Below, piece after piece: positions 13,702 through 61,060 of a stretch of 64,000 nucleotides of DNA. The position numbers were made by a program, and so were the translations under genes. Each line of letters starts with the position of its first letter. The stretch's first letter is position 1. The notes under the pieces were generated by a model. The model did not search any database, had not been told where the DNA came from, and saw only the letters and a program-made list of their open reading frames with translations. This DNA is from Blastocystis sp. Blastoise (taxonomy: Eukaryota; Protista; Bigyra: Opalinata): contig JBBPEB010000004.1 of the NCBI GenBank assembly GCA_039096225.1, positions 558,001-622,000 of the forward strand, in the 5' to 3' direction.

Positions 13702-13773
13702 GGCCTGCTGGTCTAGTGGTATGATTCGCGCTTTGGGTGCGTGAGGTCCGGGGTTCGATTCCCCGGTAGGCCC
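13702..13773 (+). tRNA. tRNA-Pro (anticodon UGG)
   Basis: GGCCTGC/GTAGGCC acceptor stem, CGCGC-TTTGGGT-GCGTG anticodon arm, CGGGG-TTCGATT-CCCCG T arm, followed by a T-run terminator. Confidence 0.96.
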
Positions 13774-16536: not shown

Positions 16537-17085
16537 TTTAGTTGTAATTGGTTTTCGTGGAACAAAGAATGTTCAGAACTTTATTCAAGATTTAGGAGCA
16601 CTTGTTCTTGGTAAAATGAGTGGTTGTGAAGGAAAGTGTCAAGTTGCTGTAGGTTTTTATAATGCCTATTTAACTGTTCGTGATGAAGTATATATAATAA
16701 TATAATTATTTTTTTTTTAATTTTTCTTTTAATTTTAATTTTCTTATTCTATATATAATATGTTGTATAGATAATGTCAACTGTTCAAAAGTTATTAGCA
16801 TATAATCCTAAACTTCAAATTTTATTTGTAGGCCATATATCCTTTATTTAATATAATAAGTATTATTTTTTTTTAGTTTAAATTATTATTAATAATCATG
16901 GTTTTAATTTTATATATATATATATGTTCTTTAATATATATACAGTCTTGGAGGTGCATTAGCTACTGTTGGATCTATGGATTTTCAATTAAATTACAAT
17001 ATATCTACTAATCTTATGTATACATATGGTTGTCCTTATACAGGCAATAAACAATTCGCTTCTATTCTTAATCAAAACTTAGGTA

Positions 17086-17121
<36 letters not shown>

Positions 17122-17518
17122 GAATCGAATTATCGTGTTACCCATAATGCGGATCCTATTCCTCATTTACCTCCTTCTGTGAATAATTATGCTCATCCTG
17201 GCGATGAAGTATATTATTATTATATATTATTATTATTATTATATATTATTATATATTATTATATATTATTATTATATTATTATATATTATTATATATTAT
17301 TATTATTATTATTATATATTATTATATATTATTATATATTATTATTATATTATTATTATTATATATATTACCTATATAAAAACTATATCTATATATAGAT
17401 CTTTTATAATGAAAAGAATACTGCTTATAAAGTGTGTGAAAGACCTGAAAGTAAGAAATGTTCTAATTCTGTTATCTTACCTGTTAATATGAACGATCAT
17501 ACAAGTTATTATGAATAA
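16167..17518 (+). CDS. Secreted class 3 lipase
   Basis: Signal peptide MSFQILIASLFFALVVVA; VIGFRGT, VAVGFY, VGH|SLGGALA, YTYGCP, RVTHNADPIPHLPP, C-terminal DH. Confidence 0.93.
16837..16943 (+). other. U12-type (minor spliceosome) AT-AC intron in lipase
   Basis: 5' ATATCCTTT, branch-like TTCTTTAAT, 3' TAC. Removal restores GHSLGG. Confidence 0.92.
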
Positions 17519-18419: not shown

Positions 18420-21400
18420 TATATATCAATATAGGATCCACTTAAAATGAAATTACAAGACAATACATTAAAACATTTTAGTTTATTTAATAGAATTGAT
18501 GTCAAATTTTTATTATTTACAAATTCTAAACATTGGATAAAACGAGCTAAAAAATATCATATCGAATATTCAACTAATTTTACGTATGTCTTGTTTTATT
18601 TATTATATTTTAAAATTATTTTGCTTTATTTATTATATTTATTATATTTATTATATTTATTTTAGACTCATTATTTATTTTTATAATTCTTTATATATAT
18701 ATATATAGTACAAATGAATATGGAACTCCTTTTTTCTTTCCTATGTTAGAATACATAGAATCTCATTATATATCATCTTTCTATGGGTTTTTAAATGGAG
18801 ATATATTATTACATGGAAATATAGTTAATATATTAGATACTGTATTGCAAGATATACAAACAGGGAAACTATATCCTCAAGTATATTTATTATATTTATT
18901 ATATTTATAGATTAATATTTTCAATGACTATGTTATTTCTATACTAATTAAAAGATAAAGACTATTATCATAGTATTATTTTTTAAATTTTATTCATATA
19001 CTTATAATAACTATATATAACTATATATATATATATATAGATAATGATTACAGGTCGTCGTAATAATAAGGAAATTGATATAACTGATAATATTGGGACT
19101 ACAAACGAAGAAATTAATCAATTTATTCAACAAAGTGTCTATAAAAATGAACAATTTATTCCTGTTTCTCAAGTATATATGTATATAACATAGTTTACAT
19201 ATATCTTATATATTTTTAGGATTATTTTATTTTTACGAAGGGTACTTTTGATTATCCGAATATGTTCCCCGTGGTTATTGGTCGAAATGATTATGATAAC
19301 TATTTAGTTGATTACTGTTATCATCGAAATGACTCTATTTCACTTATTGATGGATCCAATGCTAGTATATTTTCTTATTCTTTGTTTTTTATTTATTTAT
19401 TATTATTTATTATTATTTATATAGTAATTGCATTACATCAGACAGAGTCCCACGGTAATTTCGCCGGTGAGAGAGTGAATCCCGATAAGAAATGGAATCA
19501 TCTTTTGATTGGTAAGCATCATGAGTATGATAGTGTGCTATTTGCTAATTGGAGATTATGTATATTATTATTATTATATTATTATTATTATTTATTTGTC
19601 AATATATTTATATTATTTATTTATTATTATTATTATAAGTATTATTATTATTTATTTGTTAATATAATTTATATTATTTATTTATTATTATTATTTATTT
19701 GTAATATTTATTATTATTTATTTATTTAGATACCACTACGGATAACCATAATTATCTCATTCACGCGTCTCCATTTGATGATAATTATACCGACAGAGAA
19801 TTACAATTTCTTCAATCACATATACCTGATACTAGTTGTATATTTATATATTATATATTTATATATTTATATATTTATATATTTACAAGCGTTTCACGAC
19901 TGGCTACGCCAGCCTACGCTTGAGTTTTGATAGTTGTCATCTCTTAATTGTTATATTTTATGTTGGTTTTTTTTTAAATATTATGTTTATTTTTATGTTT
20001 TTGTTATTCATTTCTATTTTTTTATTTTTAGGATGAAGACTATTTCATATTTTATAAATTATTATTTCAATTGTTTTAGTTGTTATCTTCTATTGTTTAG
20101 TTATTAGTTTAGTATATTCTAAATAATTTAATTCACACTTTATTCATAATTCCTATTTAACATTTTATATTACATTTTTTGAGTAGTATTTCCTTTTTTA
20201 TTTAGTATCATTTTAGCTATTTTTATTATTGATTATATATATTTATTGTTTATTAATAATAATTGATTAGCTCTTATATTTTATTTTTAATCTTATTCAT
20301 ATTTCTATTTCAATTTAGATTTCAATTTCTATTTCAATTTCTATTTCTATTTCTATTTCTATTTCTATTTCTATTTCTATTTCTATTTCTATTTCTATTT
20401 CTATTTCTATTTCTATTTCTATTTCTATTTCTATTTCTATTTCTATTTCTATTTCTATTTCTATTTCTATTTCTATTTCTATTTCTATTTCTATTTCTAT
20501 TTCTATTTCTATTTCTATTTCTATTTCTATTTCTATTTCTATTTCTATTTCTATTTCTATTTCTATTTCTATTTCTATTTCTATTTCTATTTCTATTTCT
20601 ATTTCTATTTCTATTTCTATTTCTATTTCTATTTCTATTTCTATTTCTATTTCTATTTAGATTTCTATTTCTATTTCTATTTCTATTTCTATTTCTATTT
20701 CTATTTCTATTTAGATTTCTATTTAGATTTCTATTTCTATTTCTATTTCTATTTCTATTTAGATTTCTATTTAGATTTAAATTTATATTTTAGTTTTCTA
20801 TATTAATTCACTTTTCTTTGTTAATTTATTTATAACTGTTTTTGTAATTATAAATTCATTTAGTTTTATAAATATTTTATACTTTAAACAATATTATTAT
20901 GATTATAAAATATTTTTTCTTTTAAAACTTATTATTATCAGTTATTTCTTATCTTTAAGAATTTATTTTTTATTTTTAATTATTCTATATAATTATTATT
21001 ATGAGAAAGAACTTACTCTTTTGTCTAAAAAATATTATTTATTCTTTTATAAATTTTCTCATATATTATTTTATTCCATTTTAAATTATTATCATTTTTA
21101 TCTCTATTTGATTTTTTATATTCTATCATTTCTTTTTATATATACTATTATATATATATATTTAATATTTTATTATACCCCTTTTCTTATTAATAAATGT
21201 TTAATTATATGTAATAGTTACTATATTTTAATACTATCAGATTCAAATGTTTATAATATTATTATTTTTTATTACTCCTATTTCAATTTGGATTTAAAAA
21301 AATATATATATATTTTTAATAATTAAAATATATATATTATTCTATATAATCGATAATAACTCATAGAGTTCTTTCTAAATATTTATCATATATAGAATTT

Positions 21401-24400
21401 CTTTTATAAAAGAAAAAAAGAATTATTTTTAAAAATTATCTATTCATTTTTTATAATGTTTTCAAAATCATTTCATTAAATGAAACGAAAAACTAAATAT
21501 AAACCAAAAATTACATTCTATATCATAAATAGATTTAGTACTTTAAAAACTGTAACTATCATACATAAAATATAGTTTATAAAACAAATGAGTTATTTTA
21601 AAAAAACTCTAAAAGACTTTAACGTTTTGAAATACACATATCCACTTTTATTTTAACTAATTTTATGCTAATATACATATATATTTAATTTATTATTTTA
21701 ATTTATAAAAAGTAACTTGAATTTCATTTGTTTAAAGTCACAATTACAAAAAAATGAGTTCTTTTGAAAGATAAAAAACATTCTTTAAACAATAATATTT
21801 TTGTATTTAGTGACAAAAAAACGTATTATACTGTTTTAGAAACAATTAAAATCTTTTTACCCATTCTAACATTCCTATCAAACAGTCAACTACATTTAAT
21901 TAAACTAATTTTTAATATTTTATATTCTATAATAAGTCTATTTATTATTTTTATAAAAAGTGACTTGAATCTCTTGACTTAACTATTGTAATTCTAAAGA
22001 ATCAAATTTTTAAACAACTTAAAATGTTTATTTATTGTAGATTTTAATATAAAATACTCCAAAAACACTCAATACTTTCTTATTCTAACCATTTTTTTAA
22101 AATAGACTCATTTTAACATTTTGGTCAAACACACAACCACCTTTATTTCAAACAATTCTTTTATTATTATAAACATTAAACACTCTAATACTCATTTTTA
22201 CAAAAAGTGACTTGAATCTCTTCACTTAAGACAGTCAAACAGACAATTCAAAATTATTTTACCCTTTAAACTCATTATAAAGTGATAATATTTATAGAAT
22301 TGTCCTAATATGTGGTTTAGGACATATTGAACTACTTTTTATAAAATTATGAGCCAACATGTGCATATATCATTCACTCGTCAACTCCACTTTTGACCAT
22401 TTTTTTGAGATATGCAATACATATAATGTCTAGTTTTCAAATATGTAAAAATTAATTGTCAAATATGAATTTGATTTGTCAACTTTCAGAAAATTTTTAG
22501 AAAAACGATTTTTCAATTTTCAGTTTTTTAACATGTTATACTATTGACTCTACTGAACTCATTTTTTTATTAATTTCAAATATTAAAAATAATATAATTA
22601 ATATATCTTATTCTATGTATTTATTTGTTAAAATTATATAAAATAATAAAATATTGACTGAGAAATTAATGTTATAAAGTATACCCTTTTTTCAAAAAAT
22701 AATTTTTTTATGTTTTTCATATATAATTTTTTATCTCAAAAGTTATTATATATTTTGATAAGATTTTTATCAATATATAAACTATAGGTTGTCTAGTTTA
22801 TATATAAGTTTTATTTATTTTTTAAAAATTAATATTGATGGAGAAATTGTCAAAATAAACTATAGTATCAAAAATGTTTTCTTTTTTTAAACGATTTATT
22901 TCACTAATTAAAGACAATTAAAAACTTATTTATTTATTTTAAGCTTATTTATGACATATACAACTCATAAAGACTCATAACTAACTTTTTAAAACAAACA
23001 TTGTCTGTATCAGTTCAACATGTTGTCTTAACTTTTTCAAATAAGTGATATATAGTATCCATGAGTGGTTCTAAACACATATTAAAACGTTTTAAGAGTT
23101 TATTGAGTTAACATTGTCTGGTGATCTGTTGTTAAAGTCTTTTAAAAACAAAATAAAATTGTAAAATATGTTTATTTTGGTATGTAGTTTTTAAATATAA
23201 AGTAAAATGTCAAATAAAATTGTTAATGATGAAAATATAAACAAAAAACAAATGAAAACTTTTTAAGAAAATTTTTTGAAAGTCATTTTTTATTGAGTTC
23301 AACTATTGACTCTTGTCACCTGAGTTTTCAATTAATTAAAAAAATGAAAAATATGTATCTGCTATGACATGTCTAGTTTCTAAATATGTTTTAACTTTTT
23401 TATTTTATTAAGAATTGATTGAGAAATCACAATAACAAACTATACCCTTTTTTGAAAATTTTCATTTTTATGTTTTTCATATAAATGAATGTTTCTCAGT
23501 CAATATTCAATATTTAGATAAAATAAAAAATATGTATCTGCAATAGCTTATCTTAATTATAATTATACTTTTATTTTTAAAAAATACCCAAAACTCAAGG
23601 AGAAAGACGAATAACAAACTATACTATCAAAACATCAAAATTTCTATTATCAAATATTTTCTTATGAAAACTTTTTAAACAACTAAAAGACATATTTCTG
23701 ACATGTATTGATTCAAAATCACTTGAATAAACTCAAATAAGTTTATAAAGAAGGAATGTGTTGGATATCAGTTTGTCTTTTGTTGTTATTTAAAGGAATT
23801 ATTGTTGTTTCAGAGTAGTTGAGGTCAGTATCATTGCATATAAAATGGTTTTAGAGTTTATAGTTAGTGATGTGTGTATTGATATGTTGTCAACTTCTAA
23901 ATATAAACAAATTTACCCGTCAAAACTATTTATTAGACTAACCCGTCAATAAAAGTCAATTTTATAAAAATAAATATAAAGAATGTGAGTAGATATAGAA
24001 AAAATAAGAAAACAATAAAAAATAAAAAACGAAAAATAAGTGTTTTTATAAAAATGAAAAATATTGGATAAAATAGAAATAATCCAATAATTTTGGTTAA
24101 AATTTTGTGCGAAAATGGTTTTTTGCGTTTTTTAGCCAGAAATTTAGAGTTTTCGAAAAATTTCTTTAACAGTCATTTTCAGAATTGTGTTCCGGTTTTT
24201 ATGATGTTATTTTTATTTTATAAAAGTTAATAACAAAGTCAATAAATGTGAAAGTGTGTGAGACACCGTACGCTACATGAACTAAATTAAGGATATTAAT
24301 ATATTTATAAAGCTTGTTTTTATCTTGGTACTGGATATGTTTCAGGAAAAATCAGTTCAATTTGTAAAACAACTGAAGTTGTTTATTATGATAAGTGGTA

Positions 24401-24422
24401 TAGGTATGTTTATATATATATA

Positions 24423-26466: not shown

Positions 26467-29400
26467 TTACATATTCGCTAATTCTTTTTCTAAGTCATCT
26501 AAATCACCATCACTTATTTCACCTGAAATATCACTGAAAGTGTCTGAATTATTAGTATTATTATTAGTATTATTACTAATATTATTATTATTATTAGATA
26601 CGATATCTTCATCATTATTCATTTCTATATCATTTAAAACATCTTCTAAATTATCAGCTGTTATTTCATCTTCAACTTCAGTAGATATACTCTCATATAT
26701 ATTATTATTATCATTATTATTATTATGTGTAATAATATTTTGTTCTTTTTCTTTTTGACGTTCTTTCTCTTCTTCTATAATTTGATGAATATCCACGGTT
26801 ATTTCTGTTTTCTCTTCATCTTCTTTCTCATTTGTATTTACCATAATATTATCATCAAAATAATTATTAGTATTTTCTTCAATTTCTTGAGATTTCTCTT
26901 TATTATTATCATCAGAAACTGAATTAGATTTTAAATCTGTCTGAATCAAGCTTAACATACCTTGAATAGACATTCCTTCTTCACTATTTTTAAAAGTATT
27001 ATAATCTATATATTTATTTGCAGGTATAAAATTCTTATATAATATTAAAATATTTTTTTCTATTTGAGAAGCTTCTAATACTTGAGGGAAAAGATCCATA
27101 AAATCACGGGGATCTGCCAATAAACTACTAGCAGGATTTTTTCTTTTTAATAAATCTTTTTTCCATAAATCTACAATTTCGCTAATTCTAGACGGTATAT
27201 ATGTACGTGCAAAGAAAGCAGCTTCTGCATATCTTTGAGTATTTAATAATATAGATATACAATTATCTATATCACTTATAATATAACTAGCAATAAAAGA
27301 AATATTATAAAACTTAGTATCTTCTGATCGTTGAGATAATTTCTTAAGTCCTTCTTTATCTCCTAAAGAAGATAAAAGTAATAATAAAGCAGATAAATCA
27401 TGAGCACGAGTACTACATTCCTATATATATATATAATAATAATAATAATAATTTATATATATTATTTATTTCATTTGAAAAATATAGATTATATGTTATA
27501 ATAATAATATTGTTGATAATAATAAATATATTAATAATGTTATTAATAATATTGTTGATAATAATAAATATAATAATAATAATATATATATACAACAGCT
27601 AGATGCAGATTTCCTAATTCAATACAAACATCACTAAGTCTCTTCCATCGTTGATATATATATATCTTATCATTTAAAGAAGGCTCATGAAGAAGTAAAG
27701 AATAAGCTTCCTATAAATATATTATTATTATTATTATTACATATATTTATAATAATAATACTCTAATAATATATAATAATATATAATAATATATATACAT
27801 CAACTTTCTTTAATTCGATACAATATTCAAATTTCAATTCAGGATCTATAGCTAAATGTAAAGCTTCCTCAACATAACCGCGGTTATTTAAGAATTTAGC
27901 TAAAACATCATATTTTTCTTTTGATATTTGTGTTAATAAATAATTAGCATGTTCAATATTTTCTTCACATATATCTGTTTGATAATCCAAAACAGAAGAA
28001 TCAATAGTATAACTTGTTATATTATACTGTATAATAATAATATATATAATAATAATATATAGAATAATAATATATATAATAATAATAATATATATAATAA
28101 TAATAATATATATACATGATTATCTGTAAAATACACTTTCTTGTCTTTAGGTATATATTTAAGGAAATAGGAACGGTTACCCACATAACTAATTGTTTCA
28201 ATATAAGATCCAATCATATATTTTAATTTATTTTCTGAAACAAATAATAATGCATGATTATACCATTCTCCACGTTGTGCAGTTAAAGTATTTTCAGAAA
28301 TAACTTCAAATGCATTATATATACCTATTAAAATAATAATAATAAACATAATCATAAATATAATAATAATAATCATAATAAATATGTTAATAATAATAAT
28401 ATTATTATACCTGAAGTTTCTTCTTCTTGTGTATATTCATGATTATCAACAACTTCCTTTCTAAATGATAAAACATAGAGAGAATCACTAGTAAATATAG
28501 CTACTAATTCATTATCACTACTCCAACATATATACTATATAATAATATTATATTATATTATTTAAAACTTTATCAATATAAATATATATATATACATTAG
28601 CACTAACATCAATTTTACGTATAATTTTTCCTGTAGACCAAGAATAAAAGATAATAAATTGATTATAAATAACAGAAAGACAAGGACCTCCATATAGGTT
28701 TACTACACCTTCAGGAATAGTAATAGTATGAGAAGGATTGAAATTAGAAAATATATGTAATGTATTCTGAGTCTATATATATTATTATTATTATTATATA
28801 AATTTAAAAAAATAATATATAAAATAATATATAAAATAATATATGAAATAATATATAAAATAATATTATTTTATATATATATCTATATATATACCTCTAA
28901 GATAGCATAGCTACCATTATCAATACCCCAAGTAAAGAAAAGACATTTACCATATCCTTTATTACGTAACTGTCTACTTGTATATATATAATACTCATTT
29001 TCACCATAAACACTAATAAATCGACTATTTGGAGAATGAGAAATAATCATAGGAGTAATTTCACATCGACCCAACTATAGTTATATTATTATATAGTTAT
29101 ATTATTATATAGTTATATTATTATATAGTTATATTATACTTATTATTATAAGTATATTAATAATAATACATATATACATCTTTAGTATTAAGAGATATTA
29201 TTTCTCCGTTATGTTCTCTCTCAGATTCTCCCTCCATAATAGGGATTGCCGCCAAATTACTAATAAATATATCATTCTGAACAGACCAGACAATTTTCCC
29301 TTGGGAATCCATAGAAATAGTAGGTGTTTCAACACCAATTTGATAAATACTAAATCCATCATCAAAACCTAAAGCAATCTATATATATATATTATAATAT

Positions 29401-60988: not shown

Positions 60989-61060
60989 GCCTGGTTAGCT
61001 CAGCGGTAGAGCGCTTGACTTTTAATCCAGTGGTCAGGGGTTCGATCCCCCTATCAGGCG
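60989..61060 (+). tRNA. tRNA-Lys (anticodon UUU)
   Basis: GCCTGGT/ATCAGGC acceptor, GCTC/GAGC D stem, CTTTTAA loop, AGGGG-TTCGATC-CCCCT T arm, downstream T-run. One T-C mismatch in the anticodon stem. Confidence 0.95.

Follow-up and report, generated by a model that had tools for sequence, protein, structure and literature searches.

A Helitron family, very probably non-autonomous, with TT and CTTG ends in Blastocystis sp. 'Blastoise', one copy of which lies in a short intron

The 64,000-nucleotide stretch of DNA analyzed here (the window; C13:558001-622000, about 22% G+C) comes from the 33.3-Mb, 34-contig assembly of Blastocystis sp. 'Blastoise' (Rus-B, from a Russian tortoise). Positions 19886-24299 of the window very probably represent a copy from a Helitron family of this organism that is non-coding and non-autonomous, and this copy lies antisense in an intron of a host gene. 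Directly seen are fixed asymmetric ends, an A|T target without target site duplication (TSD), a precise empty site, head-to-tail joints of copies, ends shared with elements encoding a Rep-helicase protein (RepHel), lack of coding sequence and very recent copies. A preliminary description of this DNA had already proposed a non-autonomous Helitron inserted in an intron, and this is supported by the ends, the target, the empty site and the RepHel-coding partners. The family is a canonical-type Helitron, that is, one of a known kind, with slightly unusual ends and an outer stem that includes the terminus. The element in the window comprises the following features:

19886-24299, minus strand, antisense to the host gene: the whole copy of the probable non-autonomous Helitron, 4414 nt, 5'-TTAATATCC...ACGCTTG-3', delimited by full-length genome matches, flanks, empty site and head-to-tail joints
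24282-24299, minus strand: 5' terminal core TTAATATCCTTAATTTAG, 18 nt, common to RepHel-coding elements
24266-24281, minus strand: variable block of 10 nt (TTCATGTAGC in the window copy, 24272-24281) followed by conserved GTACGG, from genome-wide pattern matches
19886-19922, minus strand: 3' terminal nested hairpin with the terminus CTTG, from sequence and fold
20274-20801, minus strand: (GAAATA)n microsatellite, from sequence, self-BLAST and a collapse of alignment conservation
21644-22229, minus strand: three internal direct repeats with a spacing of about 247 nt, 73-75% alike, from self-BLAST (element positions 2071-2194, 2318-2441 and 2575-2656)

Copies of the element are numerous, far beyond what chance would give. 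Searching the genome with the whole element returned at least 30 near-full copies, 84-100% identical, on many contigs, while the ends themselves were counted about 87 times (5') and about 94 times (3'). With reversed patterns as controls for the motif counts, the 3' 29-mer occurred 83 times versus none, the 5' 30-mer 46 times versus none and the 5' 14-mer 87 times versus three. A 35-nt 5' pattern in which the 10-nt block was left free matched at 84 sites (none in the control), the 5' ends of elements of 13.3-14.1 kb included. When ends were paired by coordinates, four size classes were obtained: about 3.0 kb (22 copies), 4.0-4.5 kb (30 copies), composites (about ten) and 13.3-14.1 kb (seven), dispersed over at least 20 contigs. 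Every one of the 83 + 13 3' ends found terminates in CTTG. All sub-family representatives shown agree in their first 18 and their last 38 nt. Across sub-families, conservation is 97% over the first 40 positions but only 70-83% over the 1.5 kb next to the 3' terminus, and of the 3' side the variant of about 3.0 kb retains no more than roughly the 45 terminal nt. The 10-nt block occurs in three main alleles across copies (TTCATGTAGC, TTCTGCAAAA and CAGCCCAAAA), is invariantly bordered on both sides, and by its sequence looks like a replaceable cassette rather than a product of drift.

Comparison of copies also fixes the boundaries. The element starts with TTAATATCCTTAATTTAG at window position 24299, so that its 5' end is TT. 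The preliminary description had placed this boundary at 24293, six nucleotides short; the six bases outside 24293 are kept in every copy, hence the element begins at 24299, and the 5' TC that had been taken for its terminus sits 7-8 nt inside. There is a rotation ambiguity of one base, as TT...TG in A|T consists of the same letters as TA...GT in T|A. All 24 copies read at -1 have A there and all 28 read at +1 have T, with a further bias to T/A at -2 and to A at +2; the flanks are otherwise unrelated. An empty site is provided by a 2.98-kb copy (L027:1494-4472, G000:C5:394419-397396; L025:4730) nested in an older 4.1-kb copy at ..ATCAAAATTA|TAATATTTT.., a point across which 16 sister copies are uninterrupted. 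It follows from these sisters that the insertion was exact between A and T, with nothing duplicated or lost. Thus insertion between A and T without TSD, as first described, holds with the corrected boundary, and the multi-copy termini with identical boundaries and the copies without target duplication that had been named there as checks were found, as was an empty site.

Two head-to-tail joints, ACGCTTG|TTAATATCC (CTTG|TTAATA), are present at G000:C8:1454769 and G000:C20:74852, and they fix the length of the unit. The joint also speaks against a hidden 1-nt TSD of T, which was considered and set aside. Since G|T differs from the usual A|T target, the joints fit rolling-circle read-through or insertion of a concatemer. 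Two other arrangements were noted: coordinates suggest another nested copy, on the opposite strand, at C8:1450112-1454439, and at L029:4471-4487 (G000:C7:74402-74419) two 2.98-kb copies of the same orientation lie 16 nt apart.

The 3' end reads, on the minus strand, CAAGCGT-A-GGCTGGC-GTA-GCCAGTC-GTGAA-ACGCTTG (window 19922..19886), and is followed by T. These letters are present as originally quoted, and DNA folding agrees with the nested hairpin proposed for them (-10.7 kcal/mol, z -2.65). The inner stem GGCTGGC/GCCAGTC stops 12 nt short of the 3' end, within the distance of about 10-12 nt that is characteristic of the short hairpin of canonical Helitrons. The outer 7-bp stem CAAGCGT/ACGCTTG pairs the terminal bases of the element and is invariant across the copies seen.

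The seven copies of the sub-family that includes the window copy are 99.5-100% identical. Over 3803 compared nucleotides the window copy has no differences from the copy C8:14916-19323, and the flanks of the two differ; this identity to a copy on another contig indicates that the window copy was inserted recently. The length of the (GAAATA)n array varies among otherwise identical copies, which explains most of the size spread of 4.0-4.5 kb. Apart from the translated microsatellite no open reading frame was found in the window copy, and searches of the element with Rfam and ARAGORN returned neither a match nor a tRNA. When compared by BLAST with ten RepHel loci and the rest of the window, the element gave low-complexity matches only; it has no further copy elsewhere in the window and no coding sequence in common with the ten loci. 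The family looks recently active: copies at dispersed sites are identical, many RepHel frames are open and some copies are joined head to tail. We put forward only tentatively, though as a real possibility, that it is transposing today in a culturable protist and that the outer stem, instead of being a by-product, belongs to the signal for stopping and cutting.

The genome contains at least 51 matches to Helitron_like_N in open frames, most of them of 1476-1677 aa, with a PIF1 helicase domain in the same frames. Seven elements of 13.3-14.1 kb carry an open Rep+PIF1 frame (PF14214 + PF05970), mostly of about 1630 aa, between 5' and 3' motifs shared with the window copy, so that a RepHel reading frame with the same termini, which the preliminary description had suggested looking for, exists in the same genome. 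These elements agree with the window copy in the outer 3' stem, in the loops, in the last 12 nt and at the 5' end, where the likeness comprises the first 18 nt, a 10-nt variable block and GTACGG. Their 3' end, AAGCGTAGGCCTGCGTAGGCAGGCCGTGAAACGCTTG (AAGCGT A GGCCTGC GTAG GCAGGCC GTGAA ACGCTTG), was found at 13 sites, three of them with one changed base. For twelve of the 13 sites, a Helitron_like_N match in the same orientation starts 3714-3725 nt before the site, and seven of the sites have the shared 5' end 13.3-14.1 kb upstream. In comparison with the window copy, two pairs of the inner stem are changed on both sides (T-A to C-G and G-C to T-A) and one G.T is repaired; these differences of the partners are compensatory changes.

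RepHel proteins of this genome fall into at least three length groups (about 1559-1571, 1622-1644 and 1629-1642 aa), with more than 50 open frames in total. The AAGCG...CGCTTG end is found only in the group of 1629-1642 aa, so the other groups must have different termini. The nearest relatives of the genome's RepHel are Helraiser and the Helitron helicases of plants and animals: for a sister RepHel group, the match to Helraiser (7LCC) has E=1e-155, and both the HUH and the YxxxY motif are preserved in it (PHAHIL, KYxFKYxxKG). A RepHel fragment of this genome shares 99% identity with an NCBI protein of 'Blastocystis sp. Blastoise'. We also observed that in the RepHel copy at G000:C31:597587 to 617941 the PIF1 domain is split by about 20 kb, presumably by later insertions, and that the public RepHel gene models P0001 and P0002 (NCBI WA158_003519 and WA158_006971) look mis-built, with the helicase part missing; P0001 has a weak DDE_3 match at its N-terminus.

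According to the mechanism we propose, the 13.3-14.1 kb elements with the same ends would supply the Rep+PIF1-helicase protein that mobilized the window copy in trans. Having nicked the DNA at the 5' end (A|TTAATATCC), this protein would unwind and copy one strand until it met the 3' nested hairpin, where it would halt and cut after CTTG. The resulting single strand, which is probably circular, would be integrated between A and T, with a preference for TA|TA and without duplication of the target. The two CTTG|TTAATA joints in the genome would be indirect evidence for such rolling-circle transposition via a single-stranded circle. The window copy itself landed in antisense orientation in a TATATT-type microsatellite of a 61-nt intron and thereby expanded this intron to 4475 nt.

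The intron concerned occupies 19838-24312, with GT at 19838 and AG at 24311-24312. The upstream exon (..19837) ends in phase 1 and the downstream exon (24313..) completes the codon, so the reading frame is kept over the intron. The surroundings of the element are the following:

19729-19837, plus strand: upstream host exon, ..HASPFDDNYTDRELQFLQSHIPDTS, ending in phase 1, by translation and frame check
19838-19885, plus strand: left part of the original intron, from the GT donor through a TATATT-type microsatellite to the target A
24300-24312, plus strand: right part of the original intron, from the target T to the final AG
24313-24405, plus strand: downstream host exon, CFYLGTGYVSGKISSICKTTEVVYYDKWYR, by translation and frame check

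The intron had been described as far longer than its neighbors, which is the case (4475 nt versus roughly 45-180 nt by eye). Likewise, insertion into a short intron stands, while the size first estimated for that intron, about 67 nt, has to be corrected to the 61 nt that are left when the element is subtracted. As for the host gene, no Pfam match was obtained with seven single host exons, and Atlas gave only weak glycosyltransferase-like leads (0.83).

Several points weigh against taking the element for a canonical-type, non-autonomous Helitron served by the partners described above. Its canonical dinucleotides are absent, with TT for TC and CTTG for CTRR, and the link to the partners rests on coordinates and short pattern matches. 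The inner 3' stem and the 10-nt 5' block of the partners differ from those of the window copy, so that the RepHel group with the shared ends is a candidate for moving the sub-family of the window copy; the catalytic motifs were read in the sister RepHel group and not in the group that shares the ends. Of the features that define canonical Helitrons, as summarized in PMC13085455 and PMC5148889, the 5'-TC and CTRR-3' termini are lacking, while dispersed copies, fixed asymmetric ends without terminal inverted repeats (TIRs) and an A|T target without TSD are present; an autonomous partner is present by coordinates, with the HUH and two-tyrosine motifs seen in the sister group only. The missing TC and CTRR ends are also the only feature that would favor another kind of repeat, be it a TIR transposon, a retroposon, a segmental duplication or an assembly artefact, and such an origin is hardly credible: there are neither TIRs nor TSDs, no poly-A tail or pattern of 5' truncation is seen among the copies, and these are dispersed over at least 20 contigs in unrelated flanks. 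TIR transposon, retroposon and segmental duplication were rejected on the unrelated flanks, the empty site and the dispersal.

It is very unlikely that the element belongs to the Helitron2/Helentron branch instead of the canonical type. Such a placement would be in accordance with a 5' end that starts with T and not with TC, as in Helitron2 (PMC3627910), and with a 3' hairpin structure extending to the very terminus. However, asymmetric terminal inverted repeats (ATIRs) were not found (in the last 100 nt, no match of at least 8 nt when up to one mismatch was allowed), the 5' end forms no terminal hairpin (fold -1.9 kcal/mol, z 0.05), the target is A|T in every copy examined instead of T|T or T|C, and the closest relatives of the genome's RepHel are the Helraiser and plant and animal Helitron helicases mentioned above. 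In the partner frame, about 290 aa after the PIF1 match would, judged by coordinates alone, leave little room for the apurinic endonuclease domain of Helentrons. A separate matter is whether the host tolerates the insertion, as the preliminary description supposed. The 4475-nt intron may be misremoved and the host gene disabled in this isolate; the insertion would then persist only thanks to its very young age, or since the cell can do without the gene or has paralogues of it. Identity of the window copy to another copy leaves little time for selection, and the AT-rich element has many cryptic GT and AG sites on the strand of the gene. On the other hand, the original GT, AG and reading frame are intact and the insertion is antisense and non-coding, and we consider a disabled gene doubtful, if far from negligible.

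Placed among known systems, the canonical-type family of the window resembles Helitron1/HLE1 (Helraiser of bats, PDB 7LCC; plant Helitrons) in its asymmetric ends without TIRs, in A-T insertion without TSD, in a hairpin that stops 12 nt before the 3' end and in non-autonomous copies that outnumber the RepHel-coding ones and share only the ends with them. It differs from them in having TT for TC and CTTG for CTRR, in the added outer 7-bp stem that pairs the terminal bases and in its host, a stramenopile gut protist. With Helitron2/Helentrons (Chlamydomonas Helitron-1_CRe, Fusarium FoHeli and DINE-1) it shares the 5' T, a 3' hairpin and head-to-tail copies or joined ends (PMC3627910, PMC5148889), but it lacks their ATIRs and 5' hairpin and is found at A|T, not at T|T or T|C. 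Paramecium Helitrons, whose 3' ends are CCAA (PMC13085455), are similar in belonging to a protist lineage, in a non-CTRR terminus and in 3' stem-loops with compensatory changes; they differ in their insertion into telomeric repeats and their own RepHel clade, whereas the present family lies at A|T in AT-rich DNA and its RepHel is canonical-like. Variation in the terminal letters is thus already known, for example CCAA in Paramecium (PMC13085455). In tortoise Blastocystis isolates transposable elements make up 5.6-7.5%, and Helitrons are never mentioned in the genome paper (PMC12129017). Our literature search found no paper on Blastocystis Helitrons, so in the literature searched the family is, as was first supposed, undescribed.

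Other genes are present in the window on both sides of the host gene. Upstream of it, at 16540-17229 (plus strand), exon translations (..YSLGGALATVGS..) suggest what we take to be a class-3-lipase-like gene. Downstream, at 26640-29000 (minus strand), exon translations suggest a long multi-exon gene on the opposite strand. Genes for tRNA-Pro(TGG) and tRNA-Lys(TTT) are located at 13702-13773 and 60989-61060, respectively.

Knowledge of how Helitrons work is unchanged by these results. They add Blastocystis to the hosts of canonical-type Helitrons, and they are relevant to repeat annotation of these genomes, as Helitron finders that use the TC/CTRR rule would miss a TT...CTTG family. The host gene offers a natural opportunity to see if splicing of a 4.5-kb intron is possible in a protist whose introns are short. 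If the family is indeed live today, tortoise Blastocystis would be among the few natural systems with a live Helitron.

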